NCBI GenBank assembly: GCA_009103225.1
Contig: RHPI01003599.1
Location: 1-64,000 of the forward strand
DNA length: 64,000 bases
Source of the DNA: Chlorokybus atmophyticus
Taxonomy: Eukaryota > Plantae > Mesostigma and Chlorokybus algae
Direction: 5' to 3'
In this document: piece after piece, positions 1 to 60,806 of the stretch
Numbering within the stretch: position 1 is the stretch's first letter
Layout of the letters: the number at the start of each line of letters is the position of its first letter
Position numbers and translations under genes: made by a program
The notes under the pieces: generated by a model
What the model saw: the letters and a program-made list of their open reading frames with translations, nothing else
Told to the model about the DNA's origin: nothing
Database searches by the model: none

Positions 1-83
1 CCTAACCCTAACCCTAACCCTAACCCTAACCCTAACCCTAACCCTAACCCTAACCCTAACCCTAACCCTAACCCTAACCCTAA
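1..83. repeat. Terminal telomere tract (CCCTAA)n, TTAGGG type
   Basis: About 14 perfect CCCTAA units from base 1, C-rich on the + strand as expected at the left end of a chromosome. Confidence 0.97.
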
Positions 84-351
84 TCAACGGATTTAGGGTT
101 TGCGGCAGTTCCGCCACTACCCGTACTTATGTGTGTGAGCTGTTACATGCTTGTCCTGCGTCATCCCACCTTAGGCCCGGCGGATGACGGGGACTAAACT
201 CCCCGAAACCGGTACTGGGCGGTGGGCTTGAAGGTAAGTGTGTAATAGAGCTCATGCTTAGCATACTAGCAATTTGCTAGTATTTTTACAAGTTGTCCAC
301 AAAAACATTCCGAAAAAACAAGTGTTTACATTACCCATTACCGTATTCAAT
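84..351 (+). mobile_element. Putative 3' fragment (pLTR-like) of a telomere-associated Penelope-like retroelement, or a non-autonomous derivative
   Basis: Unique 268-bp segment bounded by telomeric repeats on both sides. It contains a hammerhead-like fold (175-220) and a consensus splice donor AAG|GTAAGT (231-239). No RT coding sequence was seen. Confidence 0.4.
175..220 (+). ncRNA. Minimal type-I hammerhead ribozyme-like motif (core variant)
   Basis: Stem I GCCCGG(175-180)/CUGGGC(215-220). Core CGGAUGA(181-187). Stem II GGGGA(189-193)/UCCCC(200-204). GAA(205-207), then A208-CCGG-U213 (palindromic ACCGGU), with a GUA cleavage triplet at 212-214. Deviations from consensus: U4 is G, and there is an extra C188 after A9. 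Confidence 0.55.
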
Positions 352-378
352 CCTAACCCTAACCCTAACCCTAACCCC
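352..378. repeat. Internal telomeric tract (~4.5 CCCTAA units)
   Basis: cctaaccctaaccctaaccctaacccc, same orientation as the terminal tract. Confidence 0.92.
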
Positions 379-2905
379 AAACACCCTGATGGTGCCTTTT
401 GCAATTACTGTGCGCCCTGCAGCCCATCTATGAGAAACGTGGCCGTTTAGGACTGTGACATGCATAAGCAATGTGGTGGCTCATGTTGTGCTGTGCATAT
501 GGGCCAATACGGCATCAACCAAGCCCTGTAAGCGCATGAGCAATGCAGGTATACAACGTTGGGAAGTCATACGTTGCAAATTGCAAAGGTGTCCGCTTTA
601 TGTGTATTATGTGTTGTGTCGAGATAGGTGGACCGACGTTGCATACCCTGCAAGTCTTGCAACACCCATGACTAGCGTGCTCTCGGCTCCTGCAAGCCTT
701 GCTCCCACAACTGATCAATGTCACATACAATCTGATAGAAAAACACACTATATACACACAGCATGCAGTATGGGCATGCACCCATTCATCCATCCTGCTT
801 ATTTATATTTTGATTGATTACATACCCAACTACTACATGGCAATCATTCCACTCCGCTAGTTGTGCATGACTAGCAGTGTCATTATATGTTGTGACGTTC
901 AAGCTTTGAAGTAACAAGAGCTTCACAGAACAATTATTGTGTATGTACGTTTGTTCATACTGTTGACATAAAGTGTGTCTTACTGGCCAATCTGATATGT
1001 ACTTGTATTGGAACACATTGAGCACTATGTGAGCACTGCATGAGTTCATGCAGTGCCATCTTATGATGTACTACGGATATCAGCCCGGACTGGATACTTG
1101 GAGTAGATATTTGCATTAGGATAGGAGTATTCTCCTGTATGGGGCTGCCTAGGGTATATAGGCCGTGGCACGACCGCCATTAAATTAAACTCTCACTTGT
1201 AGCCCTTTACACTTGCACTTACAAGGTTTGAGGTCTCCCTGGTGCTGTGTGCGACTTGTAGGTTGTGCTTGCATATGCATGTATAGAGCTGTTTGCTCTG
1301 TAGGATAATGAAGGTGTATGCACAACTCCTCTCTGATGACAGACTGGCAGCAGTCCTGCCAACAAATAGAGTAAACCCAATTATCTGACATTGTGCGTGA
1401 TATGCCTAATATGTTGTCACATTGATGGAGACGTGTATCATACGCATAATGCGCCGAGCCACATCCCATGCGTGATGGGTTCACAATCATGTCGACAACT
1501 TTGATTTGAGTAATGGCATCATCAGTACTTTGAGAAGGGACCAACAAACTATGTAGTCCCCCAAGCTTGGTATGAGCCAGCAGTCACTAAACAAGCTCCT
1601 TAACCAAGGATGCATGTGAACAAGCACACAGAAGTCATGCAAGGCGTTCGTGCGTGGTTAAAGATTGGCTAAGTAATGCAAGTTCACGTGCTGCAAGCAC
1701 TCGACAAACGGGTGCTAATGAATGCAAAACAAGTGCTAAGGCGGCTATGCAAGGCATGCAAAAAATTGTGTTATGTAGAGGGTGGTGAATTACACAGGCA
1801 ACCGCGCCACAGTGTCAACAGTATTGCGCAAGAGAAAGAGGCAAAACACTCAAGTGCACACAAAGGCAAAAGAGATGGGTACACAACAAGAGGGTGCACG
1901 TGTCAACTTCTTACAAGTTGTATGCTCACATAAGGCAGCATGCATGCACGCGGTTCGCCCAAGCTAATGGTGACTTTTGGAAGTTTGCGGAGTAACGCCG
2001 CCGCTTCCGCGCTAGTCCACTTACTCGCAACTTATTTACTCGACCGCCTTCTTAAATTTACTTAGAGAAGATGTCGATGTCGGCCACCGCCACCACTCTC
2101 GCATATCATTGCTGACACGTGAGGAGGTGTCGATGGGTCTTGGCACGCTGTCCGTCACCTTGTGAACCAATTCAACCGATCCTGCTAGTGGGAGCGCACC
2201 AGGGGTGCGAGGGGGAAGTGCGTGTCGAGTGTCAACAGCGTGACAGGCAATTTGCCTTACGGTACTTGCAAATCACAACTACCATGTGCAATGTGACATG
2301 TATATAAATTTTAAATAGCTTAAGTTTTTCCCTACATAGCCATAACCCTTTTTGGCCCATTATTCTGCAAAATACGGCGCGCCAAAGTTGGGGTGTGAGG
2401 GGTGTCCGCCCTCAAATGAACCACCCTTAGCTTGATGACTCACAAAACGCCCGTCGGTTCTTCTGGGTGAAAGCTCGTATCCGCGTGAAATTACGTAAAA
2501 TAAGTTTTTTATGATCGTACACATGTAATGTAAAAACACCACTCCATTCAATCGTCACATGACCAAGTTACAACGTGCCCAACTTTGAGGCAATCACACC
2601 CGTTCTTGACCTAAAACCAAACATTTTGTTTAATCCATAACTCCCCGCCTACCAAGCCGTTTGCCTACGTTCAAGGCTCTACGGACAGGTATTGCAGAGG
2701 CTTCCTACATCCGAAAGTTTGGCCGCGAAAGGACGATTACCCTAGCAGATATATCGGCAATCAACCCCTATACGGTATAGGGGCTATACCGCAAGTTAGG
2801 GCCCATTCCCAAGTTAGGGCAGTTTACCCTAGTTTTTGAAAACCCTGCCGCTTCGAGCCTATCCGCGGCACCTGGGCGGCAGCAGCGGCGGCGGCGGGCG
2901 GGTGG

Positions 2906-4688
2906 ATGGCGGTGACGGCGGCGGCGGCAGCGACGGCGGCCGGACGACTCAGGTCAGAGTGTTGTACATTTGCCGCGTTGTTGCCCTCCTCACCGCCGCC
3001 GCCGCCGCCGTCCTCGCCGTCGCCATCGGCTTCGTCGCCGTTGTTGTCTTCATCGTTGTCGCCGCGCAGCGCCGCCGCAGCCACATTACAGGGCCGAGCG
3101 GACGGGCGATGGACAGGCTACGGCCATCTTCAGCCGACAATCAGGTGCGCCTCTGCCTTAGCCGCAATGCAGCCCTATTGCCCCGTTTTTGTTTTGTTGT
3201 TGTTGTTGTTGTTCAGTGGCTGTGTTGTCTTCCAGGGGTAGGGCGAGGTTGAGGGTAGGCGCGGCGGCGGGGTGGGCGGCGAGGGCGTCGCTGTCGGGCG
3301 GGTTGGTAGGGCCGGCAGGGAAGCTGCCGTCAAGGGGCTGGAGGGGGCGCGCTCTCTGCTCTATAGCCAGGGATGTCAAGGGGGGGTAAGCTCGAATTGC
3401 ATGTCTTGCCAATTCAAGATTGCACACACACTGCACTTGCATTCAGTGTGTGCAATTGTTCTTCCTAGCAGCGTTAGCAGCAGCAGTGCTAGTGGGGGTT
3501 TGGGTGCGGGAGAAGGGGAGGGAGCAGCAGCAGCAGCCGGCGCGGCTTCATCATCATCATCATCATCATCGTCATCATCATCACCATCCGCACCGTCATT
3601 TGAGCGGGTGGGGAGGGACACGGAGCGAACTCTTCGCACGCGGGTTGTGTATGGGATCGCGATCGGCGTGAGTGCGGGGGCGACGCTGTTGGGGGGGTCT
3701 GGTGCGCTTGCGGTGGCGTTGAGCGGGATCGTCTGGCAGGGCGCGAGGGAGTACCTGCAGCTGATCAATGCGAAGAAGGTGCTGCGCGGGGCCCCGCCGC
3801 TGCCACCTTTCGCGTCCGATCTCGCACGCGCGTGCGCCGCCGCCCTCCCAACCCTCACGTGGCTCAGCGGCGGCCGCCTCGGGGCCTGCATGGCCCTCGC
3901 TACCTTTGCCGTGCTCATGGCCGTGCTGCTCCAACCGCCCGGTGTGGACACGCCTCCGCCGGCCTTCAGCCAGTTCTCCTCGGCCGTATTTGGGATGTTC
4001 TACTGCGCGTACTTGCCGTCATTGTGGGTCAAGCTCAGGGCGTTGGCCGTACCCGCGGGACCCCCGCCCGCGTGGTGGCCCCTCGCACCCACCTCGTGGA
4101 CCGTCGGGCTCGTGTCCACGCTCGTGGGCTTCGCGTGCGTCATCGGCGCCGACAGTGGGGCGTACCTTGGTGGGAGAGTGTGGGGCCGCACGCCTCTTTC
4201 TGCCATCTCACCCAACAAGACCGTGGAGGGCGCCGCTTTCGGGGCCGCCACCTCCGTGGGCGTGGCGCTCTTTGGCCGCGCGCTCCTCGGCTGGCCCGCC
4301 TCCCCCGTCTACGCAGCCGGACTCGCGCTGGTCATCTTTGCGGCAGCGCTCTGCGGCGACCTCATTGAGAGCCTCCTCAAGCGGGACGCAGGGGTCAAGG
4401 ATTCGGGGACGCTCATCCCGGGCCACGGTAAGCGCGTGGTTTGCGTGGGTGAGCAGGTGTGCAGTGTTTTGGAGCGTCCCTGCATAGGCAAGCGTGCATT
4501 TATGTGGATTTATGTGCGCTTGTGTGGAGTTGCTGTTGCAATGTCGCAGTGAGCAGCATTGTTGACACAACAACTCCTTGCGTTGTGCGTGTGCAGGTGG
4601 TGTCCTCGACCGAGTAGATAGCTACGTCTTCACAGGGGCGCTCGTCTACTTTGTGGTAAAAAGGGTGCTGCCGTTTTTTGGCGCGTAG
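2906..4688 (+). CDS. cdsA: Plastid-type phosphatidate cytidylyltransferase (CDP-diacylglycerol synthase, CDS4/5-like)
   Basis: Exons ~2906-3144, 3236-3385, 3469-4427, 4597-4688 join in phase across GT-AG introns. Motifs DSGAYLGG, SPNKTVEGA and [32 protein letters not shown]. Ala/Ser/Arg-rich transit-like N-terminus. Confidence 0.93.
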
Positions 4689-5792
4689 CAGGTCCTAGTT
4701 GGTTATAATCAAGCCAGCTGTCCACGCCGCCTGCTCTACTACTGGCAGAGCAAAGAGCTGCCACCTGCGGGGTGCAGCACGAGGTTGAGCCTAACCCGGG
4801 GTGAGGGCGTGGGAGGGTAAGGGGTGAGGGAATTGGAAACGAGAGAGAGAGAGAGAGACAGAGCTTGCTGGAGGCAGGTTGACACTCTCGCTCTCTCTAG
4901 CTGCAGGTCCTCCTTCTCGCTACCATCCTTATTGCCAAGTTAGCAACCGTGTATCTAGGCTTGTTACCTGTATGTAGGTGTGCAGTAGGTGTGAACTGAC
5001 GATATATGACATGATATGGCCCAGCCGATGCTTAGCATAAAACTTTCGTTCACCACAACGTCCACCTTTCATTACACTACAACCATCATGCAAAGTGCAG
5101 GCATATCCTGCCAGATGTCGGAGAGCCAGTACATCTTTCAGCTGTATACTTACCCCACAATTTCTACCGTACGAGCTTTGCCATGTCCTGACACCGACAA
5201 GCACATATACGAGGCAGCTAACTAGAGCATATGTCAAGGACATGCTGCCTGTTGTGCGGTGATGGCCACTAACATGCATGTCTAGCGGGGACGTAAAGGG
5301 TAGTGGCGCGTGTTAGGTAGCAACAAGCAGAAGATACTGGCCCGGTGGTGGCATATGATCATGCTTGCATGCTGTTTGTGTGTGCGCTTGTGCTTCTGCA
5401 TAATGCATGTACGAAACTACCTCGATCATATCATGTACAGTTGTGCAAACCATGCTTGCACCATGATAGCCTGTAGTACAACTGGATGGTACAACATATG
5501 CAAGTGGCAGTATGCAATGGACTGCATGGGTGACAGTTGCAGAACACAGCAGCGGATAGTGGTCGAAGTTCAGTTTGCCTAGAGATAGCCTAATGGATGC
5601 AGACATGACGAGCCAAGTGCACTTGCCAGCACAGTAACACAACAATGGTCGTATGGACAGCAACCGCAGCATCATTATCAACATGTTGTCAACCGCGTCC
5701 CACCCCAAATAATGACCGCAAACCTGACTTCATGCACCCCAAACCCTCCACACAACTTTCTACTGTCGTGCAATCCCTGTCATCGTCAGACC

Positions 5793-8700
5793 TCAGACGC
5801 AGGGCACCACGCGAATAACAGCGCACTGCTGCTCAACATTGTACATGGTGACCACCAGCTGTCCCGGCTTAACCAGGCCCACACTCTTGGCATATTGGAT
5901 GGCGTCGTCCACGCACGCTTTGGCAGCCGCGGGGGGTGGCAGGTGCTCAGATTTGCCAGTAACCACAACGGGTATGAGGCCGCGGGTCAGCAGGCACTGC
6001 CTTGCAACCTGATGGCCGCTGAGGTCTCGCTGCTTAAAGCCGATGTCGTCACGGGCGCGGCCTCGCGGCACCACACCCACCACAACCGGACAAGATGGCC
6101 TGTACTTGGCGATCAGCCGCGCAGCGTTGCCACTGGCTGCGAGTACTACAATCAGTTGGGCATTGATCATGGACGCGCATGACACCGCCGACGACGCCAG
6201 CGCCTCAATCACCGGCATGGCGCCTTTCCTGTTGGTTGTAGACGACCGCAGCATAGCCTGCGAACACATTGTATGCAAACGCTCATCCTTCAGGCAGTAA
6301 ATTCAACACAGTACCCTCTGTGCAGCAAACGACACATGCATTTGTTTTGAGATTGCAAGACAACAGCGACTGACCTGTGCAAGTGCCTGGTTGTCAATGG
6401 ACTTTTCAGACTCCTCACAGATGCTGGCCATAATCTGGACTGCTTCTTTGGGATAGCCACCTGCAGCAGTCTCACCCGACAACATGACGCAATCGGTGCC
6501 GTCCAGCACCGCGTTGGCCACATCTGTTGCCTCAGCCCTGTACAACCAGTGTTTTTGGTTCTGTACAGGCAATCTGCATGCACAGTGCAGAGTGGCCGCA
6601 TACCACGCAGCAATGACGTTACACGTGCATCGCATGCACACACGCCAACTTTCATGCTGTACGTTAACAAGCAATTTTCCAACAGGACTTGCCTTGTTGG
6701 TCTGGGATTCTTAATCATGGACTCCAGCATCTGAGTGGCTGTAATGACAGGCTTTCCAGCAATGTTGCACTTGTGGATGATGACCTTCTGAATATGGAAC
6801 ATCTTTTCCAAAGGAACCTCCATCCCCAAGTCGCCTCGGGCCACCATGATGGCGTCTGATGCCTCGATGATGGGGTCAATGTTCCTCAACCCCTCCTGAT
6901 TTTCGACTTTGGAAATGAGGCGAATGCCTCGCCCCGCATGTCCAAGGGCACCCCTATCACGTTTAGCATCAGCAGGCATGTCACACGTCAACTGTACTCA
7001 CTGCCTTGCAAACACTTTGCATGTTACCCCCACAATGCACGAACCCGCAATACAGAAGTTCCAGACAATGCCCACACCATGTGTCTTACTGACCTAACAC
7101 GGTGCACATCCGCTGCGCATCGCACGAACGAAATCGCAACAAAGTCCACGTCATTCTTGACACCCCACATCAAGTCCTCCTCGTCCTTTTGTGTCAAAAT
7201 GGGGAGATCAACATCCACGCCAGGCAAGTTGCAGTTCTTCCTCTCGCCAATTGTCGCGGTGTTCAAACACAGACATTTTGCACTTCCCGACATGATGTCG
7301 GTCTCCAAAACCTGGCAACAGTAATGAGCATGCTGTGTAGCTGGACAGAAAAGTTGACACCTGCCAACATGTGGCTGTATATATATACCTGCAGGATCAA
7401 AGACCCGTCAGCAATGAGGACCTTGTCTCCTGGTTTGCACAGCGCCGGCATCTGATGATAGGTGATTGCAATAGTGGCGTCGTCGCCAAGGACGGTGTAG
7501 TCTGTGGTCACGGTGACCGTGCTGCCCTCCGTGTACGTTGCGGGCCCGCCACCCTTCAACATACCTGTCCTGATCTCCGGGCCTTTGGTGTCCAACAACA
7601 CACCGCAAAGCTGGCCAGTGAGCTCACATGCCTGACACACAAATCCACCATACGTGGCATCTATCAGTACCATCCCAGTGACAATTGCTGACGTTGAGAG
7701 GCTGCATGCTAATGCATTGTGCCAAGAACCATTCGTTTCCAAGTGTGCCACTGTCAGCCACTGTAAGCATGCCTAGAGTACCAACCCAGCTGCCATGCAC
7801 GCACCATTGAAGGTTCTACTGCTGCGGCATACCTACAACTGAGTCACATGCACAACGTAGCCATGTGACCGAGCGTAATTACAACCAGAATGCACACCTG
7901 TCGCAGGTTTTCCAGGGTTTCCGAGTGGTACTCGTGCGATCCATGAGAGAAATTGAATCGTGCAACGCCCATGCCAGCTCTCAAGAGCTCAACAATCTGC
8001 TCCACCGTGCGTGAGGACGGCCCCAGAGTGCAAACAATGTGCGTCTGTTTTGAGTAGATACGCTTGGGTTTGACAAGAGGAGGAGCAACAGCAACAGGTT
8101 CCAAATCGATTGGATCTGCCGTGTCCAGAAAACTCAGATCCTGGAGGTAAACAAGACACATTGTGTCATGTTCTGCGTTGTTGAAAGCTGCATGAAAAGT
8201 ACAACCTCTATGCATGTGCCTGCGCATGCATGCCGGGTTTTCTTGTTTATCAATTAATCACCTGGTGCACGTTGCCTGGTTGGATGAGTGTGCATGGTGC
8301 AGGAAGAGTGGCGGTGAGATGCGCCTCATAATTCTTGTTGCTGCCATTGCCCCCGGACCCGTTGCCGTTATTGCTGCTGTTGCTTTTGCCCTTGCCCTTG
8401 CCCTTGCTGATACTGGTGGTGCTGGTGCTGGTGCTGCTGCTGCTGTTCCCTTGCTCCCGCTCCCCAACCCCCAAACGGCTGTACTGCTTCACCTGCTTCA
8501 CGTCCCGCACAAGAGGAGATTACACAAAGGCTTGAACAGACAAAAGACAAGACAGCAAGCAGCATCATCACAGCATGTACCTGGCCGGTTGCGGTAGCGC
8601 CGTCGCCATCGCCGGCTGCGGCACTTGCTGAGGTGCGTCTTGTCCTCCTCCTGCTGCTGCTGCTTGAGGAGGACGAAGAGCAGCATGAAGAAGCTGCAAA

Positions 8701-11299: not shown

Positions 11300-14200
11300 G
11301 CGTACGGAATGTCACATCTGCCCACTCAAGCCATGGATGATAAATATGACAAGATGAAAAAGCAGCAGCAGCAGCACGAAGCACGCCACAGCAATCAAGG
11401 CCTTCTTGATGATGTTTTCCATCAACCACATGAGTCGGGGTGGGGAGTTGCCAACGTCTTCCAAGTCAGGGAGTGTGTCGAGGGTGTTGAACGCGCGCGT
11501 CCGCAGCTTATTTCAAAGAAGATTTAGGCGTTCTTGTTGTCAATGCTGCGAAGGAGAGTGTTGCGCTGAAGCCCTTCAGCACAGTGATCGTTCAATGCCT
11601 CGTGCATGCGTTCAAGTCGGCCATCAACTTGACGCCTCCCACGCGCAAAATGCTTCTGCTCTTACCCTGCGCAGCACATAGCAAACGTACACAACACGAT
11701 GTTACTCTACTCTCTCCCTGATACACACACCTTTGCACAGGCTGATTAACGCACATGTGCGTGCGTTTACAAGATCAGACAGGCACACTGGTGTGTAGGC
11801 AGTTCAAGAACACGTTGCATCATCTGCTCAGCGTTGCAAGCAATCAACGGCCATTCTTGCCATGGGTGTACAGCAAGGAGTAGTGTCTTCTTGCTGTGCG
11901 TCAACATGACATGCGGCACATATGCAATTATGTGCACTCCTTTGTGTGTTGCATGCAATAAGTTGAGAACATCGACAAGCAAGAAATGGCGTGCACTTCT
12001 ACCCCCCCCCTCAGTNNNNNNNNNNNNNNNNNNNNNNNNNNNNNNNNNNNNNNNNNNNNNNNNNNNNNNNNNNNNNNNNNNNNNNNNNNNNNNNNNNNNN
12101 NNNNNNNNNNNNNNNNNNNNNNNNNNNNNNNNNNNNNNNNNNNNNNNNNNNNCCCCCCCCCCCCCCCCCCCCCCCCTTCCCGCAGTTCTCACCTGAGTAC
12201 ACCACTTGGTCCGTGCCTTGTACTGTGCAACAGTGATCGCAGCATACGTATGCGGCCGCATGCGCGCGAGCGGAGTCTCCCGCAAACACCACGCTCTTTG
12301 CATCGCCCAACTTGGCCAACAAGTACAAGTGCATGTGCACTTGAAACAGCGGCGCTACGCCTGCTGCCAATGTGATGTCTTCATCGGTGAGATAGTTGCG
12401 TGCCAAGCCGTCCCTTTTCCTGAACAAGAGTGCACGTACACCATGCTTGAAACGGTAACTTCTGGACTTCTCTTTGTGTACTACATTTCCAATGCTCGCT
12501 TCGCGTAGGTAATCAAGCTGACTGGACGGCTGTCATGTGCCTCCACTGTGCAGTTGCGGATGACTTCCATTAGCTCGGTGGAGATTGGCGAGCCGAGTTT
12601 GCATGCAACCAGCATCACCGTGCATACAACTCCCGGAAGCAGCCAAAAGTGCTTGCTCGCCGGTGTACATGTGTGCAAGCGCACGTGTGAGTGCAAGGTG
12701 TGTGCGCGCATTTGAGCGTGCATGTACTTGTGCGTGTGCACGTCTGGAGGCGTGTGCCAATGTGTGTGCGCATGCGCATGTCCAAGTTCTTGAGCATGCT
12801 TGCACGTTGGTCAATGGAACGACTCATACAATGATTAAAAGATGCACACACACTTGCCTGCTGCTCAGCACAAAGTTTATGTGCAGGCTGCTCAAGCGTA
12901 TAATCATCTGAAGCTGCGGAGCTGTCACCAAGCACCTGCCACTGCAAGTTTTGACTAGATCTCTCTCATGTTTTGCTTATTGTTTGAGTTGTCCGCCCAT
13001 CATAGGGCACTTGGCAGCAGCTTCATACCTGCACTTGCACAGAGCGGTTGCAGCGCCCGCTTCATGCTACGATCAGCGTGCAAGCGGCTCACTTGCATAG
13101 CTCTCCATGAGGACTTGTACACGATACCTGCACCGTAAAAAGTTTTATATTCGTGCGTGTGCCTGTGTGGGAGTGCATATCTACGCATACGTGAGCGTTT
13201 TTGCGTGTCTGTGCATGTAGTTTTACAAGCAGTGGACCCTACAGCAGAATGTAAGGGAGCATGCTAATGCATGAAGGCACGTACCCGTTAGCTGGGCGTC
13301 TTAGCAGCAGACCACCTTGACGCTCTGGCCAGCACATTGTTGTTGGTACTCGTCAGCACATGAGCTCCTATCCATGAATATGTTGCATGAGCCTTGCACG
13401 AGCTGGCAAGTATGGTGCTATGTTGCAAATGTAAATGCACACACGCACGCGAGCACAGTGACTTGTACACTCCCATGAAGTTACACTTGCACTCGAACAC
13501 GCACAGCCGCTCATGCCATGTGCATGCACACTGCACTTACCAACATGTTGTAGTGCTGCAGTCTTTGGCATACCCATGTCGGCTGTAAATGAGATGTGGC
13601 CTCTTGCGGATTCGGTTGGCAGATTGTACCACCACACTGTCGTCAAACACGAGCAAAGAGGCGTCAAGAGCACGTAGAGACGTCTAGCAGTATCAAAGCG
13701 TGTTGTAAGCAGTTGGGATGCAATCATACAAGCAGTAGCATGCGCAGTTCGATCCTGCCAATGTAACATTCAGTGCAATACTCAATATTGTACTATATTG
13801 TTCATCATAGCATTCAACGAACGTCAGCATGGAAATCAAAACCTCACTGCCTTTAACCAACATGTCAAGATCTGCCTCTGCAAGGATAGCACACCGGGCA
13901 GGCTGGTAGTTGTCACTAGTAGTTGTCACTGTGTGGTTGTTGCGGGAATGTTGTGTGCGATGGTGCTGCTGATTGGCGTGGGTGCACATGCACACATGAC
14001 ACTGCAATTTTTTGGATCCCTGGTGTTGAGTCACAGATTACAAGTCACTGTTGTCCAGCGTGATGCTCACACACATGTTGGCACCTTGCGCTGTGCTAAG
14101 CAAGCGTCATCTATACAAAGACATGCTAGGTGCCAGCCAGCTGAGCAGGCTGGACACCACTGCACACTCAACATGCACCCTGCCGTGTGTGATGCTGCTT

Positions 14201-42249: not shown

Positions 42250-44351
42250 TACCCCTCTCAGTCCATGCAAAGCTGGTTTTGCTGCTCCCTTGCCTTGACC
42301 AGTTGATTTTTGTTATTGCTGAGAAAGGGTCCTCCACCTGGTCACTCGCAGCTGTGCTAACCACCCAAACGCCTTGCCTCCTCCCCCCTGCCTTCTGAAG
42401 GTAGTTGACTACCATATGACCGTTGGACGGCACCTCTTTGACCATAACATCCCAAGGGGGTCATCAAGGTCTTTATCCGAAGGCTCATGCGGAAGTCTAA
42501 AGTTAACAATGGACTTGCTGTTGTGGCGCATCTCCAGGACATCCCCTTTTTTTTGGCCACACAAGCAAGGGGATGTCGGCTGCAGTCACTTTCAACTCTG
42601 TGATGTCATACTTGTACGCTCATTAAATTGCTACATCACGGTTGAGCAATACCCACACTTGCGTTGCAACTGGTCTCCTCTGATGAGCGTACATTCATCT
42701 GCCAAACGTCCAATGCCCTGTGCACCAGTGTCTCTGTCAATCAGGTCATTTCCTATGGCATCACGCTTTTTAGTATAAGGCCGCACTTGCACATGGATAG
42801 TTGACTTCCGTCAATTGAACAGGTTGATCTCAATCACCCAGCATGATGCAACAGTTGGGTTCGCCATCTTTACGTTATCAACGCGTCTGCAAATTCCAGT
42901 ATCAAAGGCTTTACATACAAGACACACGCGTGCATGGCTGTGTCATAAACGGGACTGGCACTGGACAATGCTTATGAGACTTTAAGTCACAGCAATGGAA
43001 TGCATAACTTGTAGGCACTATCCACTGTCTATGAGACTTATAGTCATAGCACTGGAATGCATAACTTGTAGGCACTATCCAGTGTTTATAAGACTTTAGG
43101 TCACATCAATGGAATGCATGGCTCATAGACACTTGATAGTGCCTATGAGAATTTAGGGTACAGCAATGGATTGCATAACTCGTAGACTAAACCACACACC
43201 TGTAGATGACCCCGTTATACAAATATGCGCGAAACTTGCGTACGCCTAAGGTGCCAGTGATATTCTCAACGCGTTTGGTTTTCAAGGCCAACGGTCCCTG
43301 AAAAAGGATAGGCTTCTTGGTGCTGCCAATAAGGATGCCCTATGCTCTGATTGATCGCATATGCTCAAAGTCTAACAATTTCTCAGCAAGGGTCTGAAGC
43401 TCCATAGCGTGCTTTTGAGTGCGCACTTTGTAATGACAGATACTACATGCTCCCCTCAAAGGCTGGTAAACCTACTGAGAGTCCGCCGTTATATCATTAG
43501 CTCGGTGGCACAACAGCTTTTCAATCCGCTGATCTTCTCGCATGCCATTGAGCGTCCTCAGAAACCATCTCCTTAATGCACGCCGCATGTAGCTGTTCTC
43601 AAACTGCTTCCCGTTGGTGAAGGTGTTAATGTAGTTGGACACAGTGCGCTCTTGCATTAAACACCAGTACACATCATGACTCCCGTGCCAGATGATGTCC
43701 TCCAGAATGTGACCGGCACCGGCCACATGCTTGTTGGGCCTTTTGTAGGTGCCAAACAGGTTCTCCAAGTAGACCCTCCAACATTGCAAAATAGCGTCAG
43801 CAAGTTCCGACAGCTCCGTACTCCAGCCATGTAGGTGAGAGCTGAGGAAGAAGATGCGGATGAGCGTTTGAAGCACAAAGCTGACATCTTTGGTTGCTTC
43901 GTATACCAAATTGGATACAGCATATGGCACAGCATACTGCACGAACAGTTGCAAGTCTTGAACCAAGCCAGGTGCTTGCTGATGCCTCATGGGAAACGTT
44001 TGCTCTTCAAGTCCATGGGGCGTGATATGCCCATCTAGGACAGCCTGTGCTCCACTTTGGCAATGTTTTCGACATGTTTTAAACTTTTTGCACCAAGCGT
44101 ACTGTGCACAAAACTCTTGCAAAGCCCTCCAACAACTGGTGCATCGTGTTATAGACGAAGTCACGTCAAGGGTTATAGTGAGTGCGTCGCATTGTGCATC
44201 AGGTAGTGCAGTCTGTATCTGGGGACACATCCCTGTGCATTCGTTGTCACTGTCATCACATAGTGCACACATAAGCACTAGTGTGGTGAGTGGTAGTGGC
44301 ATCAAGACATGCAGTAGAGCACAAACACTCTACCCTGCATACACTTTCACC
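42250..44351 (-). mobile_element. CMC (CACTA/Mirage/Chapaev)-like transposase relic, C-terminal part, 5'-truncated
   Basis: ORF 43472-44305 contains KRPNKH...HILEDIIWHGSHDVYWCLMQERTV...TNGKQFE, resembling the PNxH...HxxxDIxxxG....W...ER motif of CMC transposases. Stop-broken frames continue toward ~42250. Confidence 0.55.
42958..43196. repeat. 57-bp minisatellite, ~4 diverged units
   Basis: Units start at 42969, 43026, 43083 and 43140 (consensus like TGYYTATGAGACTTTAGGTCACAGCAATGGAATGCATAACTTGTAGGCACTATCCAS). Confidence 0.9.
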
Positions 44352-47300
44352 TGTGGACCAGCTGCATGAGCAGGCCCACCCCGTTCTCTCCAATAAACGA
44401 CCTCGGCAGCTAGAGCCCAACCTCCAATCTCACCTACGAGCGGACCAGTGACGGGAGCAACAATTGCAGCAGCAGAGACTCGCGTTCTGTCTCCGGCGTC
44501 ACTCCGATCCTGTCTACTCCTCGTTATCGAGCTTCCCCACTCTCGTCCGACAGTGACAACTACGAGATGGAGTCTTCCAGCTCAACCACGTCCCTGCGCT
44601 TTTTCAGACGCGCTGGCACCGCCTCGCTGGACGAATTCATCATTAAGTTCCATTCCAAGATGCGACAACAAGCACTGAAGAACAAAGACTAGTCGTATGA
44701 GATTTCTTTTTACATTGCTGCTCAGTATCTGGACCATGAAGCACATGATGTCTGGAAGTCTGCTGCTGAACTGCATCGAGTTGACGGCTATGGCGAGCTC
44801 GCCAGCACCATAGCATCTGCGTCACTGCAAAGTCCAGCAGTTTTCTTTCCGCCTGCCACTCCTACTGCAGTCATCGGTTTGTCCATAGCGGCAGCCATCG
44901 ACAGGGCAGAGGAGGAGGAACCTGGGTTGGTTATCGTCAACCTAACCCCTGCAGAGATTGAAATCAAGACAGCTGCACGACGGGCCTGGATCCTGGATCG
45001 AATTGCTGTTCTTAAAGATCGACGAACTGCAGCCGTTGAGGTGGGCACACCCTTACCTTTGGCAACACCTGGCTCTCGTGCGGGAGGCATTGCTTTCACC
45101 CTCGGGTCAATCGCATTGCGCGCACTAGCCATCACTGTAGGTGCTGCCATCTCTGTCTTTCCACTTAAGGACGTATACGCTGCACTTCGTCGCACCTTCC
45201 CACCGCAGACTACCAGCAAAGTGGAGGAGCTGAGATGGTTTCGGCGCAAGCCCAACGAGGACCCTATACGCCTGTACTCCAGACTGGAAGGGCTGTTGAA
45301 GGATACTGACTACAAGATCCTCAGTGATGAGGCGACTGCAGCGGTGTATGTCAATGAGTTGGATGCCACCCTGAGCGAGTCGACGCGCCTGACCCTGAAC
45401 TACAGCAGGCCCCTTGGCTACACGCTCAAGGAAGCTTTTATGACTGCACAAGCCATCCATAAGCGCTTGGTGTATGAGAAGGCAGTGCTGGACACCAACC
45501 TCAGTGCCTGACGGACTGTAGCCAGCATAACTAACAAGCCTCCTCGCCGCGAACGTGGACGGGACGCTCCACCAGCATGCGACAAAGGGAAACGGTCAGC
45601 TCATACTGCTTTGCCTGCCCCTGTGCTGTGTCATCGCTATGGACGGCATGGGCACTACAAAAAGGAGTGCACCGAAGAGTACTCAACCCTAGTCTGCAAC
45701 TACTGTTACAAGACAGGCCACTTGGAGTCAGTCTGCTGGCCCAAGTTCCCGGAGTTAGGACCTGCCAACAGCTACAACGGCAACTACTCTGATGGCTACA
45801 ACAGCAACAACACTGGAGGCCACAACAGCAACAACTCTGGTGGCTACAACAGCAACCATGCTGGAGGCCATAACAACAACAACAACTACGCCAATGATTG
45901 CAAGGAAGAGCAAGGCTACAGGGGAAAGAAACGTCCTCCTCAGCGCAAGGGACTGGAAGGACGTCCGCGCGCTGCTGCTGTTGCCGTCAAGGCTCCAGCC
46001 AACCCACTAGGATGACCATATTGCTGCCCTCATGGCGCGTATGGCACGCTTTGAGGAAGACAAGGAGCAGGACTACTGCCTGCTACTCTGCCCGATGGGC
46101 ATTGATGGCTCCGAAGCCCACGAGAGACACCAGCACTCCGTCGTGCGTATAATCATCCCGACGAGCTCGAGGGCAAGCCGCAACATCATCAGCAGCTACC
46201 TCCTCTTAAGCCACTAGTGGTGCTGCACCAGCAGCAACAGCTACACCGGCTACGACGTCGACTCCGTCAACGTCAGCAGCAACTACACCAGTTGCACAAA
46301 AAGTTAGTGCATCAGTGGGCATCGTGACGCCAACACTGGTGAGCACGCTGGCGACAGCCACTGCTGTCACCGACCTTGCAATAGTAGGTCGCACCGGTCC
46401 CGCTCCAACTGCAGGACCACCAATGTCAGCGAGCGTTGAGATCACTCTCGCGCCACTTAGCGGCACTCTCGCATCCACCGCCGGTGCCATCATCGAGCCC
46501 GCTGCCATTGCAGCACGCACGCAGCTACATTGCCCGTCCTCGACGTCATCCAGGCTGTCCCGCGAGGTCAGCAAGCTGAGCGCGCATGGGAGACCATCAT
46601 GCGTGGAGCATCTCCCACCACCATTGTTTTTGGGCATGGAGGAGAGCGCACACCGCGCGTCGAATGCAGTCATAGCGTCTTCCTAGTGCCTGAATATCAC
46701 ACCCTGCCAGAATTGACTCAGCGGCAACTGGAGGATGAAATCCTCGCCGGCACGGCGCCTCCCATTTGAGACCGCATTTTTGTGGTCAGAACACATGTTG
46801 TACTGGATTTGGCACTACAGCTGTTCTGGACTCTGCATAACAACATGCAGACTGCACCAAGCCAGCCCGCACCAGGCCGTCATGAACCTTTCGAGCCAAG
46901 CCCGCTGAACACGTATTGAGACCGGCAACCCAACGTACAGCAGCACATCTGATACAGCTGACATGCCTTTGGGTGATAGCGAAGCACGGAGACCCCTCAG
47001 TACCGTTCGGCTTTACGAGCGCTAAACCGCTGTAGAACAAGCGTTCACATGGCGGCAGAACCAAACGAGAGAAATCAACGCTAGAGCGCAAACCCTTGCT
47101 ACTGCTCGCGCTTCCGTTCTTCAACCGACAATCGCTGGCCCATTGTCCAGCATGACACCTCTCGTCGTTGAGCCCGACATTGACCAGGCGAGGGCGCTGG
47201 CCCAACAAACTAGGGGGGTGATCGCCCCTTTACTACCCGCCTTGTTGGACAACTTTTCGAACGATCAACGAGATCCAGGGAGAGGCTACCTCACACCACA

Positions 47301-47905
47301 AGGGTGTACAGAATGGAATGGAGCAGGCTCAGTCAAAGAACAGCAACTTCGCACTACGTTGTTTCGACAAGCAGCAATGCTACATCGACAAGAGGGCATC
47401 GGCCTGAGACGGATGATGGGGATGCGAGAAGGTGGCAATGCAGCTCGAGCAAGACTAGTGACTTGGCTAGTCACCAATCACCCCGCAACCCCTCTGTTCG
47501 CATACAGCATCAGGTTGTTATGGTTGGACGCCTTCCTTCGCTTGCTACGGCAAGCCTATGACGAGGTTGCCTCGGCAGCCACTGACATCTTAGAAAGAGC
47601 TCAAGAGGCCATACTGAGGCTGCCAGGGGTGGAAGCAGCACAACAATGCAGACGCATCGCAGCTGCTTATGAGCAGCATGTCCAATAGCCAGAGATTTAC
47701 CTCACTGTGCGGGCACGAGCAACAACGGTGCTAGAAGTGGGGGTGGTCAATGGCAGATGGGATGCCTACATGGCAGGGATCATAAGGGTTCCCACCGTTA
47801 CCCACGACATAAGAGCGCGGTGTATCTCCAGCCCATGCCTTAAAATTATCGCTGGAGTGACGTGGTCAACAATCCAGCAGCCACATGGGAAGGTACATTG
47901 GTCAG
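44352..47905 (+). mobile_element. Ty3/Gypsy copy 1: putative 5' LTR, gag with two CCHC knuckles and extra domain; 3'-truncated
   Basis: Homologous along ~2.3 kb to the minus-strand element at 61450-63990 (e.g. PVLCHRYGRHGHYKKEC...CNYCYKTGHLESVC; GRGYLTPQG; RARLVTWLV). Tentative TG...CA LTR at 44352-44552. Homology stops exactly where the repeat at 47906 begins. Confidence 0.8.
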
Positions 47906-51342: not shown

Positions 51343-52500
51343 TCAACCTTTCTCCGTTTGACCAAGGAGATCCAGCACCCCTGTGGGGTACACTTTGAGT
51401 ACCTTGTAGACGGTGCGGCCTACGGAGGTGTCAAGCGTGTCTTTGGTGGCTGCCATGCGATAGGCAAAGTCCCCCGCTTGGAACCGCCGTTGGCGCTCCT
51501 CGTAGAAGCCGCTGCGTACGCGCTCGTAGCGCAGCGTGTCGCGATGCTGCGCGATGCGCAGGTTGTTGAAGGCCATGGGGATGGTGCGCTCGAAAAGTGC
51601 GGCGCGCGTGGTGATGTCGTGGTGCATCCAGTCAGGGTCGTCAAGGTTGTTCACGACGCGATCCACCTCCTGTTGCGCACGGAAGGGGAGCAATGGTGGT
51701 CGCCCGAATAGCAGGTAGTACGGGCTGTACTCCCGCAGAGCCGCCTGCTTTGACAATCGGTATCCAAGGGCCACCCATGGGAGGTGGTCATCCCAAGTGT
51801 TCTTCTCGTACTTCAGCACGTATTTGCGGAGTGCCTTTTTGATGGTCTGTACCGTACGTTCGGCGAGGCCGTCGGCTTGAGGGTGATCACGCGAGGTACG
51901 GCGGTGGTCGATGCAACATTTGTCCAAGAGGGTGTCGAATTCCCCTCTGAACTCAGTACCTTTGTCAGTGATGACCTCGGCGCAACTGCCAAATCGGCTG
52001 AGAACGTGAGAGAGGAAGGCCTGAGACACCCCCCTGCTGCTCTTGTCGGGTAATGGCACCAGCTCCACCCATTTGGAGAAGTGCTCGATCATGACCAGGA
52101 TGTAACGGTTGCCACGCGCTGAGGGTGCCAAGTCCCCCAAGATGTCGAGCCCCCATCGGTAAAAGAGGCCGGAGATAGGGAGTGGGTGCAAGGTGGCGCT
52201 ACGCGTGTTGAGGCTGGCGCGCACCATGTCACACTGCTGGCAGTGGCTGACGAACCTTTGCACCTGTTTTGTTAATCCATACCACTAATATTGTGCCCTC
52301 ACTAGGCTGACTGTACGCTTGACACCGAAGTGTCCAAGCTTAGTGTGGAGGGAAGTGATGATGCCCTCGCGCGTGACTGGTGTCGGCACTTCCTTGTCTT
52401 CGTTGTGGAAGCGGCAATACAGCTTGTCACCTGCTCATCGATAGTGACGGGTGGGTTGGTTGACCCGGTCCTTCTCTCAAGCGCTCATGCCGGAGGGAAG
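51343..52500 (-). pseudogene. Gypsy integrase (zinc-binding H2C2 region and DDE core)
   Basis: HTKLGHFG...CQQC, RWGLDILG, EVITDKGTEF, HPQADGLAER. Four stops lie upstream of the core and there is a frameshift near 51360. Confidence 0.92.
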
Positions 52501-52664
52501 ATGGCCACTTTAAAGAAAGGAGAGTGACGGCTTGTCATGCCATATGTCCTGCCTAGTGTCGGGGGGCGCCAGCTCTGTGTCATCGACGTTAATGTCGGCT
52601 GCGTGGGCGTCTCCCAAGGGTGTGGTTGCCGCAGGGTCGGTAGACTCAAGGGCAGGAATCGCCT

Positions 52665-53916
52665 CTACCGCTGCTGAGGCCGTGGTGTTGGTCTTGTGCC
52701 ATAAGCGCAACGCGGCAGCAGCAAACATGGATGCCATGGTGGGGGCATGGTGGGAGTTGCTGCCGGGATGAGCTCATGCCGCGCTCCAGTTGCGTTGTTG
52801 GTGCTGAGGTGAGGGTTGCGACTGAGGCCATCGGTGTCTTGGTTGGTGAGGCCAGCGCGGTGGTCAATCTCAAAGTCGTATCCCTGTAACAGCAGGGCCC
52901 ATCGAGCAAGTTTCCCTGTCAGATGTTGGTTGGTCATCAGCCACTTGAGGGGCTGATGATCGGCGATCAGTTGGAACTGTCGACCAAAGAGGAAAGGTCG
53001 GAAGAAGGAGATGGCCCACACTGCAGCAAGGCACTCCCCTTCGTAGCTGCTGTAGTTGGCCTCGGCGCTGTTGTTGCTCCGGCTGGCGTATGACACCACC
53101 CGCTCCTTCTTGTTCTCATCGTGCTGCACCAGCACCGCTCCCATCCCCAGTTTGCTCCAGTCGGTGTGAAGGATGAAAGGCTTGGCGTAGTCCGCACGTT
53201 GAAGAATGGGAGCGCTGGTGAGTTTGCTCTTCAGCTCCTCGAAGGCCTGCTGTTGCGGCTCCTTCCACGCGAACTCCACCTCCTTCTTCAGTAGCTCGTT
53301 GAGGGGCCTTGCGATCTTCGCGAAGTCCTTCACGAACCGGCGATAGTAGTTGGCAAGTCCCAAGAAAGCGCGCAGGCGTGTGAGGTCTGTCGGGGCAGGG
53401 ATTGCTGCCAGAGCCTCTACTTTTGCCTGCTGCACATACACACCATGGGGCACAATCATGTGCCCTAAGTACGGCACCTTGTGGGTGAAGAAGGTACACT
53501 TGTCGTGGTGTACGGTCATCCCCACTCCCTTGAGTCGTTCCAGCACCGCTTCGATGTGCTGCAGATGCTCCTCGTTGCTGCGGCTGAAGATGAGGATGTC
53601 ATCGATGTAGCACCGCGCGCAGTTCAGCCCCTTCAAGGCTTTATCCATGACGCGTTGAAACTTGGCGGGGGCATTCTTCAGCCCGAACGGCATTACCTTC
53701 CATTGTTACAACTGTCGGTTGCCCCAGAAGGAGGTCTTGTGCTTGTCCTCGTCCTTGATGGCGATTTGGTTGTACCCCTGACGCATGTCCAGGATGCTGA
53801 AGACTTTGCAGTCTCCCACATCATCAAAAATACCCTCTGCTGTGGGCATGGGGTACCGGTCTTGCTTGGTCTTGTTGATGAGGGGGCGATAGTTGCCACA
53901 CATGCGTCGCTCTATC
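52665..53916 (-). pseudogene. Gypsy reverse transcriptase and RNase H
   Basis: FSILDMRQGYNQI, MPFGLKNAPAKFQRVM, CYIDDILIFS, FILHTDWS, EGECLAAVWAI, DHQPLKWL. One stop at 53706. The N-terminal RT part lies at 58826-~59000. Confidence 0.95.
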
Positions 53917-56900
53917 TGTTGAAGGACTAACATGCACATGTAGTTGAGGCAAGCATGGATGCACAGAGACAGAGCTACCGCCACCAGAGCATACACAAGT
54001 CACATCACATTCATCTATTACAAGTTGTCCGCTGGTTCTTATACCAGCCAGTTACACACACGTCTACGTTTGCAAGCACTGCGTAAGCTATACTCAGCCT
54101 TTAAACGCGCTCTAAGCTGTGTTGTCTTCCTTACAACTAGAGCTTTCCAACAAGCTCTTACACGCCTAATATGAGTAAGTATACGCGGAGATACAAAGCA
54201 GTTAGTAAGGCTCCAGTCTGGAGTCCGGAGTCTGGTCCGACGACGCCATCTTGCTAAGTCCGGACCTAGTGCTCGTCCTTACGACCTTCTACTCCTGTGT
54301 GGAGGGTCGATGCTGATCGTAAGTAGGAATACTCTCAACACTCCCACGCGAGCAGCTTGACCTCCAACGCTTGCTCCTGTAGTCAATCACAGATGCCAAG
54401 TCCTGCGCAACAAGTCTTGAACTTGAGCGGTGACAATGGCTTTGTCATGAAGTCCGCCAGCATGCCCTCAGTGTTGCAGTACTGGAACTCCACCTCTTTC
54501 CTTGTGACTCTGTCACGCACAAAGTGATGCATGACATCAATGTGCTTCGTCCTTGCCGAGGCGATAGGGTGCTTCAACAACTTGATGGCTCCTTGGTTGT
54601 CACAGTTGATGACGATGCACGCCATGGGGTGCTCCAAGTCTGCCATGAGCTTGCGAAGCCAGAGTGCCTCCTTCACTGCTGCTGCCGCTGCCATGTACTC
54701 AGCCTCTGATGTAGATGCTGCTGTTGTTGGCTGCAGCCTGCTGTTCCAGCTCACCACGCCTCCGTTCAGCTTGAAGACGTAGCCTGTAGTGGACCTCCTG
54801 CTGTTGAGGTCACCAGCAAAGTCCGAGTTGCAGTAGCCCTCCACCTCAGTGCTCCCGCTCCCAAACTTGATGCCAACTGTTGCGCTCCCAGCAACATAGC
54901 GTAGTACTCCCTTTGCTGCTCTCCAGTGCTCCATGCTCGGTGCAGACATGTAGCGAGCAAGTACTCCCACAGCATGTGCAACATCGGGATGTGTGCACAC
55001 TGCCAGATAGAGCATGCTGCCTACCAGCTCACCATATGAATACTGAGCCTTATCGAGTACCTCCTCATCCTTTGCCTTGATGAGGGCAGTGCCAAGTGCC
55101 AACGGTGTGGTCTTGGTCATCGCTTCAATGAGCCCAAACTTGGTGATGAGTCTTCTCACCATCTGCTCCTGACTGATCTTGATTGTGCGTGCAGCCCTGT
55201 CGCGCTCAATCACCATGCCAAGGAACCACTTGGCCTCTCCAAGATCACGAACTGAGAATGCTGCCTGTAGAGCAAGTTTCGTCTCCTGCAAGTGGTGCAC
55301 CTGCCTGGCGGTGATGATGATATCATCAACATACACGAGCAGCCAGACTTTGTTGTCTGCATGAATGAAGAGCCCAGGGTCTGCAGAGGGTGCGGTGAAG
55401 CCAAGTGCCTCCAGCTCCTTGGTGAGCTTGATGTGCCACATACGCGGTGCCTGTTGCAGCCCGTACAGTGCCTTGATCAGCTTGCACGCTGTGCCTCTCT
55501 CCCCTTCTTCATATCCAGGTGGTTGCTCGATGAAGATCTCCTCCTCCAGCTCTCCGTAGAGGAAGGCAGTCTTCACATCCAGGTGATGCAGCTCTAGGTC
55601 TTCAGCAGCAACCATAGCTAGCAGTGCACGGAAGGTGGTATGCTTACTTGCAGGTGCAAACACTTCGTTGAAGTCCACACCTTCCTGCTGCAAGAAGCCC
55701 TTTGCCACCAGTCTTGCCTTGTAGCGCTCAATGTTGCCCTGACCATCACGCTTCACCTTGAAGACCCATTTCACTGGAATGGTCTTCACTCCTTGCGGTA
55801 ACTGCTCCGGTGACCAAGTGTTTTTTGCATGGAGTGACGCAATCTCCTCGTCCATAGCACGCTGCCATTGCTCCGCATCTGGTGCTAACAATGCCTCCTC
55901 GTAGGTGCTTGGCTCCTCATTGTGCACACTGGCGACGTGTGCCTTGTGTAAGAAGTCAGGTGCCTTTCTCTCCCTCACTGGGTATCTCCGAGCTGCGTGC
56001 TCCTGCTGCAGGTGCGACTGCTTGTCTGCTACAGTGGAGTCCTGCTCACCCTTATCGTCGATGATGGCCTTGCCTGTAGCCTCCACTGTTTCAGGATGCT
56101 CCGGCTGTGCTTCATCTTCAGGAAAGAAGCCTGCTTCTGATTGTGACAATCCCTCGTGGAAAACCACCTCTCTGCTCACAATGATCTTCTGAGTGTCCTC
56201 GAGCAAGATCCTGTAAGCCTTGGAACCCGGTTCATAGCCAACGAAGATGCCCTTCTTGCTGACCGGCTCCAGCTTGTGCCTGAGCTGTTTAGGCACTAGT
56301 GCATATGCCGTGCATCCAAACACACGCATACCACTCACATCTGGTGTGGCTCCATAGAAGTGCTCCCACGGAGTCTTCTGCTCTGAGCTCACCGGAGACC
56401 TGTTGCGGATGTAGTTGGCAGTGAGTACCGCCTCCTTCCACAAACTGTCTTCCATTTTTGTGTCGCTGAGCATGGCTCGAACACGCTCCAGGAGTGTCCT
56501 GTTGAGGCGTTCAGCTGCTCCATTCTGCTGCGGGGTGTAGGGTGCCGTTGTCTCGTGGCGTATGCCCTTGCTGGCGAAGAACTCCTTCAACTCCTTGTTG
56601 ATGTACTCCCCTCCTCGATCACTCCTCATTGCCTTCATCTTGTTGCCAGACTGGGTCTCCAACAAGGCCACAACTGTGCGCACAGCTCCAGCAACTTCTG
56701 ACTTGAGCGTCAATGGAAAGATGATGGACAGCTTGCTGTAGTTGTCGAGGAATGTAGCAAAGTACCTGGCCCCTCCCTTCGCCACAATGCGCATAGGACC
56801 ACAGACATCCATGTGCACAAGCTCGCAAGGATGCTGACTGCTAGAAGAGGATGATGGGAAAGGCATAGCATGCTGCTTTGCAACCAGACATGGTTCACAA

Positions 56901-58825: not shown

Positions 58826-59339
58826 CTGTCCAGTTGCCTGCTGAATCCTTTTTCAGTGGCATGACGGTTGCTGCTGCGAAGTCCGATGTGGACTCTTCGA
58901 TAAGGCCTGCATCCAGCAGCGCCTTACATCTCTGTTCCACCAAGTCTTCTTCCAACTTGGAGAGCCTGTATTGTCGTCGGAACACCGGCTCAGTGTCCAC
59001 CAGCTCGATGTCCATCTGGTACACTGAGCATGTACCCAATTCCTTCACATTGAAGCTGAATTGGCTCCTCCATTTGTTGAAGAGAGCCTCCAGCTTCTCG
59101 CGAGTGTCTTCTGTGGCCAATGGGCCAATGGCATGGTCCCAAGAGGTTGCATTGGCAACCACGGGAATGTCCTCCACTGTCACTGCTGCTTGCTCCTCCA
59201 TGTGGATCACCTCGAGGGCTGTGTGAGCTGCCTTGGTGTCGGCCACGCGATCAGCCCACCCCCCAGCCAAGTGTTCGAGATACTCGAAGGACACGTGGCG
59301 GTCCTGCGACGCGAAGCTCAGCTCCAGCAGCCATACCAT

Positions 59340-60272: not shown

Positions 60273-60806
60273 GCCCTGTTGCCTGCGAAAGGTGTGGAAC
60301 TCCACCACTCCGGTGGCCACCATATGGCGGTCCTGCACCTTGACGTGGCTTCGGTAGTTGGGGAAGCGCGTGGTGATCAGTGGATGGCTGAGCAAGATGT
60401 GTGCATCCACCTGTTCGCGCCAGCGCCGTTCAGCTGGGTCTTGTAATGCTACTTCCACGGTGGCATCCTCCTGCTCCTCGTTGTACGGGATGGGAGAGGA
60501 GTCGCCGGTTCGACACGGGGCCGTGGCACCAGCAGCGGCTTGCGTCCGAGCGCCGTCGTATGTGGCCATTACAGCCTTCCGGGTGCGGGCGTGGCTGCGT
60601 GTGGCCATGGCAGCCATTTTGCGTTGGGCGCGCGTGCGCGAGACCAACTCGAGAGGCAGGAAACCCTGCACCTCTCCGTCATCCTCATCCCAATGTGGCC
60701 GAAACCACGCTCACTCTGTCCAGCAGTCGAGGCCCATGCCCACAGGGAAGTTGAAGTCCTGCCCAAGCAGAAAGTCGAAGGAGCCGGCATTGGTGACCAC
60801 ACATTG

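Follow-up and report, generated by a model that had tools for sequence, protein, structure and literature searches.

The window, that is, the whole 64,000-nucleotide stretch of Chlorokybus atmophyticus DNA analyzed here, begins with telomere repeats of the CCCTAA motif reported for this alga (PMC8287931). Tandem Repeats Finder (TRF) and the raw sequence showed that positions 1-83 are a perfect CCTAAC array of 13.8 copies, followed by 268 bp of unique sequence and by a short C-rich tract. This bears out the order described in an earlier interpretation of this DNA made from its letters only (hereafter, the sequence-only reading). The features of this chromosome end are:

1-83, C-rich strand on the forward strand: terminal telomere tract (CCCTAA)13.8, at the left chromosome or contig end (TRF, 100% matches).
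84-351, forward strand: unique module of 268 bp between two telomere tracts, proposed to be the 5'-truncated 3' part of a hammerhead-bearing retroelement RNA.
93-104, reverse strand: one AAACCCTAA unit resembling a telo-box, inverted in orientation, close to the 5' edge of the module (pattern search, 2 mismatches).
352-378, forward strand: interstitial C-rich telomere tract (CCTAAC)4 + CCC (TRF, 4.3 copies, perfect; pattern search).
~376-392, forward strand: degenerate telomere-like units (CCCCAA ACACCC...; from the sequence).
3272-4552: open reading frame (ORF) for a CDP-diacylglycerol synthase (Pfam CTP_transf_1), the first gene inward.
~5.8-7.8 kb, reverse strand: pyruvate kinase gene.

The pattern search also showed that, with T351 taken as C, the tract at 352-378 keeps the phase of the terminal tract, an agreement expected by chance in 1 of 6 cases. 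The degenerate units at ~376-392 look as expected for the innermost and oldest edge of a telomere. The CDP-diacylglycerol synthase product matches the EukProt entry jgi/Chlat1/8071 Chrsp75S07539 at 100% identity. The chromosome end (1-8000) is gene-dense, with housekeeping genes within ~3 kb of the telomere, and the window holds no repeated subtelomeric block. The sequence-only reading had proposed comparing 84-351 with the genome and with all other chromosome ends; within the 64-kb window, neither a seed-based repeat search nor blastn (word size 7) found a second copy of the module.

The piece is a scaffold and not gap-free (N at 9996 and 10946, and a 137-N gap at 12016-12152). These gaps would suit an assembly artefact, in which a chimeric or mis-joined read put the telomere tract 268 bp beyond a short interstitial tract that is itself genuine. 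We regard such a misassembly as very unlikely, because perfect tracts in one orientation meet the module at clean junctions, degenerate inner repeats follow the second tract, and the hammerhead-like module itself would be left unexplained.

The sequence-only reading had recognized a minimal type-I hammerhead on the C-rich strand of the module, and every one of its elements was found at its place on the forward strand by inspection of the sequence and a motif check. The bulge and the closing stem go beyond that description. All parts of the motif are on the forward strand:

165-226: type-I hammerhead-like motif, a three-way junction (sequence and descriptor; helices I and II also in the unconstrained MFE fold).
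165-170/221-226: closing stem, 6 bp.
171-174: bulge UUAG at the loop-1 position.
175-180/215-220: helix I, 6 bp with one G-U pair.
181-187: core CGGAUGA, in which G182 occupies position 4, where U is expected.
188: extra base C188, between A9 and G10.1.
189-193/200-204: helix II, 5 bp starting with G10.1-C11.1, of GGGG/CCCC design, with loop 2 at 194-199.
205-208: GAAA (from the sequence).
209-212: loop III CCGG, inside the palindrome ACCGGU, over a 1-bp helix III (A208-U213).
213-214: U213 and A214 of the GUA triplet, with the predicted cut after A214.

Three helices surround the junction and helix I is open-ended, as defines type I. In the layout that is canonical for type I, loop 1 lies between a helix I of 6 bp and a closing stem, and helix II has 4-5 bp (PMC4209133); the candidate follows it, with a 4-nt bulge after its 6-bp helix I, then the closing stem, and a helix II of 5 bp. 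For the hammerheads of Penelope-like elements (PLEs), Cervera & de la Pena (PMC4209133) described three traits that had not been built into the descriptor of their study, and all three are present in the candidate motif: a base between 9 and 10.1, the pair G10.1-C11.1, and a palindrome at 15.2-16.2/loop 3. The first of these, the extra base after A9, is tolerated and PLE-typical (PMC4209133).

The conserved core (C3 U4 G5 A6 N7 G8 A9 / G12 A13 A14 / A15.1-U16.1 / H17) is not complete: 12 of its 13 positions are present, and the sole departure is at position 4, where U4 is replaced by G182. U4 belongs to the uridine turn, and a G there is expected to leave the copy inactive or nearly so. Because G182 replaces the U of this turn, we predict that the ribozyme of this copy is probably dead or nearly so. 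Hammerhead cores are conserved 'almost without exception', and the rare variants usually impair cleavage (PMC3088659).

The resemblance was compared with chance using a descriptor that allowed at most 1 mismatch among the conserved positions and 0-1 extra base after A9, excluded G at H17, and required helices I and II of 4 bp or more each, with G10.1-C11.1 in helix II, as well as a palindrome of 2-8 nt at 15.1-16.1. Across the two strands of the 64-kb window, it matched a single site, the candidate. It had no match in 19.2 Mb of dinucleotide shuffles and none in 128 Mb of first-order Markov sequence (total null ~147 Mb), and the null rate is at most ~2.3e-8 per strand-base, which corresponds to <0.003 matches per window and ~1e-5 per 268-bp module. 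Relaxing the descriptor (2 mismatches, any helix III) produced two further matches in the window, both weak, and a tandem or dispersed second hammerhead was not found in the window even with 2 mismatches. The candidate is well above the descriptor minimum, with a 12-bp helix I carrying a bulge at the loop-1 position, a 5-bp helix II, and a 6-nt palindrome. This confirms that the motif is a non-random hammerhead look-alike, far beyond chance.

These values bear directly on the explanation that the module is ordinary subtelomeric sequence with an interstitial telomere tract and that its hammerhead resemblance is a coincidence. One wrong core position and an extra base are what a coincidence could leave, the Rfam models described below are silent, and many kinds of motif could have been matched post hoc. 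Against this stand the null rate per base and per module, the extent to which the candidate exceeds the descriptor minimum, and an asymmetry of G-U pairs in the surrounding hairpin that points to structured RNA (see below). We consider a coincidence highly improbable.

Control sequences came from a metagenome scan with a degenerate 21-base pattern derived from 183-214, which yielded 12 loci. Eight of them represent a conserved bacterial coding stretch that shares the 21 specified bases without helix I and were judged to be chance matches. The other 4 are real hammerheads of unrelated elements (one cut by a contig end) and served as controls and design comparators, not as homologues. The descriptor recovered five canonical hammerheads, in the loci L001, L009, and L006, and rejected the 8 bacterial look-alikes. 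Because the metagenome matches had been selected by sharing the letters of the candidate, a covariance model built from them would be circular, and they were kept out of any covariance model for scoring the candidate. Two of the loci, on lake-metagenome contigs, carry hammerheads of very similar design:

L001, 439-468 and 1065-1094: hammerheads of the form CUGAUGA-GGGG...CCCC-GAAACCGGUA.
L009, 166-193 and 765-792, reverse strand: hammerheads of the form CUGAUGA-GGGG...CCCC-GAAACCGGUA.

L001 consists of tandem units of 626 bp and L009 of tandem units of 599 bp, with one canonical type-I hammerhead per unit, and the hammerheads of the two loci differ by compensatory changes in helix I. Both are retrozyme-like repeats. 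As examples of tandem hammerhead repeats and of non-LTR retrozymes (metazoan type), L001 and L009 have in common with the candidate the GGGG/CCCC helix II, GAAACCGGUA, and small non-coding units. However, retrozymes are head-to-tail repeats with one hammerhead per ~170-630 bp unit, whereas the candidate is a single motif within the window, has no tandem copy, and is flanked by telomere repeats, so that the head-to-tail repeats, each with a hammerhead, that define a non-LTR retrozyme are missing from the window. The third locus, L006 (573-750), is non-tandem and contains a canonical hammerhead with an extra base after A9, the 5' half of which is one arm of a ~165-nt inverted repeat; both the extra base and the position of the hammerhead within a long hairpin are as in the candidate. 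In Rfam, the L006 hairpin gave a weak miRNA-precursor-like report.

A search with hammerhead models of the Infernal type had also been suggested by the sequence-only reading, and it was negative: the Rfam hammerhead families (clan CL00010) gave no match at the gathering threshold in the window, at E<=10 in 1-1200, or at E<=10 with the 73-nt motif. With the canonical controls, the L001 hammerheads scored 19.2 bits on Hammerhead_HH9 against a threshold of 52, and those of L009 and L006 were not reported. Because the same models barely see or altogether miss canonical hammerheads with a short helix III, the silence of Rfam on the candidate is weak evidence.

The motif lies at the tip of a larger fold, the elements of which are likewise on the forward strand:

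133-257 (133-183 with 209-257): long imperfect hairpin, tipped by the hammerhead-like junction (MFE and centroid folds of 84-351).
159-166: CGUCAUCC, complementary over all 8 nt to the core stretch GGAUGACG at 182-189 (from the sequence; not chosen in the MFE fold).
231-239: splice-donor-like AAG/GUAAGU directly after the closing stem, with candidate acceptors AG at 279-280 or 291-292 (sequence only).
263-283: hairpin formed by a perfect 9-bp palindrome, AUACUAGCA / UGCUAGUAU, around a 3-nt loop (fold and sequence).

According to the pair list, 7 of the 42 pairs in the hairpin at 133-257 are G-U, and A-C oppositions are absent (sign test ~0.02, post hoc). Because 7 G-U against 0 A-C is what selection on a forward-strand RNA would give, this strand is favored. 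In addition, the fold of 84-351 had a z-score of -3.8 on the forward strand (0 of 200 shuffles as good) versus -2.5 on the reverse strand. The polarity of the motif, the G-U versus A-C asymmetry, the better z-score, and the donor-like site, which corresponds to the consensus splice donor noticed in the sequence-only reading, thus agree on the forward strand as the RNA strand. Pairing of 159-166 with 182-189 may provide an alternative helix that sequesters the core. Thermodynamic folds of the monomer, of the dimer, and of a G182U version had core bases paired by the energy model in all cases, and because this happened in every version folded, the energy model is no judge of catalytic competence. 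The segment 164-174 weakly resembles a plant USE box, which was judged to be chance.

With the forward strand as sense, the C-rich tract at 352-378 is on the 3' side of the RNA and the terminal tract caps its 5' side. Such an arrangement is known from retroelements of chromosome ends. The C-rich 3' repeats of Athena/Terminon and Coprina elements pair with the G-rich overhang, and these elements are mostly 5'-truncated and capped by short telomere tracts (PMC6431247, PMC8557442). In the endonuclease-deficient PLEs of telomeres, represented by Athena/Terminons of bdelloid rotifers, Coprina of fungi, and the Selaginella elements, the sense strand is the C-rich strand, as in the candidate (PMC6431247, PMC8557442, PMC4209133). 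Like the candidate, elements of this type have short reverse-complement telomere repeats on the 3' side, a 5' side that is cut short and telomere-capped, and a type-I hammerhead near the 3' end. At the Chlorokybus locus, the tract at 1-83 abuts base 84 and genes lie to the right, so that a 5'-truncated, telomere-capped module has its 3' end facing the centromere. The likeness is not complete. In Terminons the C-rich repeats are immediately downstream of the hammerhead (PMC6431247), whereas the reverse-complement repeats of the candidate, although present on the 3' side at 352-378, are 125 nt away from it (226 to 352). Unlike Athena, Terminon, or Coprina elements, the candidate has only 268 bp, no reverse transcriptase (RT) at or near the locus, a G at position 4, and no chain of units.

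Altogether, these results lead us to give roughly an even chance to the reading that a hammerhead-derived relic, very probably of a retroelement RNA, is present on the forward strand between telomere tracts in an orientation that fits overhang-primed reverse transcription. Most likely, 84-351 would derive from a Penelope-like retroelement, or from a non-autonomous derivative resembling a retrozyme, whose 3' end was copied into DNA at this chromosome end in 5'-truncated form. We infer the following course of events. The telomere would have been eroded to ~four repeats, and the C-rich (CCCUAA)n 3' end of the RNA would have paired with the G-rich overhang. A reverse transcriptase would then have extended the G strand along the RNA through the hairpin and the hammerhead, stopping or being truncated at base 84, and telomerase would finally have healed the end by adding new TTAGGG repeats (1-83). 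The tract at 352-378 would accordingly be either the primer-binding repeats of the RNA 3' terminus, or the stump of the former telomere, or both. In the parent element, the ribozyme may have served in processing or as a 3'-terminal fold.

The sequence-only reading had proposed a telomere-healing, endonuclease-deficient PLE. This proposal is partly supported. The orientation, the three PLE-hammerhead traits, the capped 5' side, and the documented occurrence of PLEs in Chlorokybus atmophyticus (PMC8557442) agree with it, whereas the distance of 125 nt to the repeats and the lack of an RT in the 64 kb do not. A linked PLE RT ORF without a GIY-YIG domain, which that reading had anticipated, was not found within the window: Pfam searches of 20 ORFs, among them every ORF of 300 aa or longer, identified no PLE-type RT in the 64 kb, and there was none in the first 12 kb (1-12 kb). 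The missing RT is compatible with a 5'-truncated copy, which need not keep it.

The same hammerhead retroelement fragment could have entered the telomere differently, by target-primed reverse transcription into a standing telomere array, in which case 1-83 would be old telomere. An endonuclease-bearing Chlamys-type element with a preference for C-rich microsatellites would be an example. Telomere repeats on both sides, in phase if T351 stands for C, are as expected from a clean insertion, and 5' truncation is usual in target-primed insertions. Chlamys-type PLEs have been curated from Chlorokybus atmophyticus itself and insert preferentially in (CA)n and (C)n repeats (PMC8557442). However, flanks in phase arise by chance in 1 of 6 cases, the proximal repeats number only ~4, as would be likelier for an eroded end than for a random site within an array, and the described Chlorokybus Chlamys elements have no canonical hammerheads even with relaxed descriptors (Craig et al., PMC8557442). 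If T351 is taken as C, the telomere phase runs on across the module, and end attachment followed by healing is therefore inseparable from array insertion at this locus. Healing is likewise not distinguishable there from capture at the DNA level (see below). On balance we hold insertion into an array to be unlikely.

Retroelements that reside in or on telomere repeats in a fixed orientation are also known from the TRAS and SART elements of Bombyx and from endonuclease-independent LINE insertion at dysfunctional telomeres. These end in poly(A) and have no hammerhead, whereas inspection of the module 84-351 revealed neither poly(A) or another terminal hallmark nor LINE features. The same observation, together with the shortness of the module and its lack of an RT, would suit a capture at the DNA level, in which end joining, template switching, or break-induced copying brought in a fragment with a hammerhead relic that was then capped by telomerase, without reverse transcription. 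Such a capture would leave unexplained why the motif is sense on the C-rich strand (a 1 in 2 chance) and why the C-rich tract is on the 3' side, and no donor locus was found within the window; we deem it improbable, to a degree similar to that of array insertion. A read-through of telomerase RNA, in which the module would be the 5' part of that RNA, was also considered. Its polarity fits, but plant-type telomerase RNAs measure only ~250-300 nt and carry the template close to their 5' end, which counts against it, and no type-3 promoter or terminator features are evident. This candidate was rejected as having a very low probability.

Returning to overhang-primed attachment of a hammerhead-bearing retroelement, similar systems are also known in the Chlamys-2 elements of Chara braunii and the endonuclease-lacking PLE-X elements of Chara, Selaginella, and mosses, which belong to the same plant lineage as the candidate. 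In the cited literature, these three groups are the only ones of the green lineage with hammerhead-bearing PLEs, and the hammerheads described are of the canonical type (PMC8557442, PMC4209133). In layout, the candidate resembles the Chlamys-2 and PLE-X hammerheads, which follow the canonical type-I style: helix I has 6 bp and a bulge at loop 1, helix II has 4-5 bp, and helix III is very short. These elements are dispersed genome-wide or target 28S rDNA, not telomeres. For hammerheads in Chlorokybus, a literature search yielded only the negative statement of Craig et al. (PMC8557442). Because those authors found no canonical hammerheads in its Chlamys elements, the parent of the module would be a previously undescribed family. 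A broader proposal, that Chlorokybus has undescribed telomere-attaching hammerhead retroelements, either an endonuclease-free PLE or its small non-coding parasite, that join eroded ends by way of C-rich 3' repeats and thereby act as a back-up cap, is rather doubtful at present.

PLEs are the closest relatives of telomerase, and their endonuclease-free, hammerhead-bearing, end-capping forms are central to ideas on the origin of telomerase. A correctly oriented hammerhead relic that is flanked by telomere tracts, in a streptophyte from one of the earliest branches, would extend the end-capping lifestyle of PLEs to algae. The broader proposal, if true, would trace the Athena/Coprina lifestyle back to the base of the plant lineage, within a genome in which the PLEs known so far are devoid of hammerheads. 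As one short, probably inactive fragment, the locus is of value as a lead and not as a demonstrated system, and it provides a concrete sequence for finding the parent element in the genome.

The only RTs that Pfam identified in the window are of Copia and Gypsy type and fall at 51-58 kb, where a Copia element sits within Gypsy remnants:

53916-58700, reverse strand: near-intact Copia-type LTR retrotransposon, with a gag ORF at 57014-58273 and an integrase-RT ORF at 54383-56956.
51343-53693: Gypsy-type RT/RNase H and integrase fragments adjoining the Copia element.

Direct repeats of at least 300 bp with 97% identity flank the Copia element (53916-54215 and 58401-58700). Immediately beside its LTR, a 635-aa ORF on the reverse strand (58764-60671) weakly matches the C-5 cytosine DNA methylase domain (Pfam E = 2.8e-10). 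The transposon-rich region at 45-64 kb is bracketed by long inverted repeats that have diverged to 71-76% complementarity (47429-47810 versus 61560-61941, and 45590-45778 versus 63728-63916). Coding-like GTTGTT/CAACAA repeat arrays are present at 45771-45890 and 63569-63731, and 42957-43184 contains 4 tandem copies of a non-coding 57-bp unit with 79-82% identity to the reference copy.
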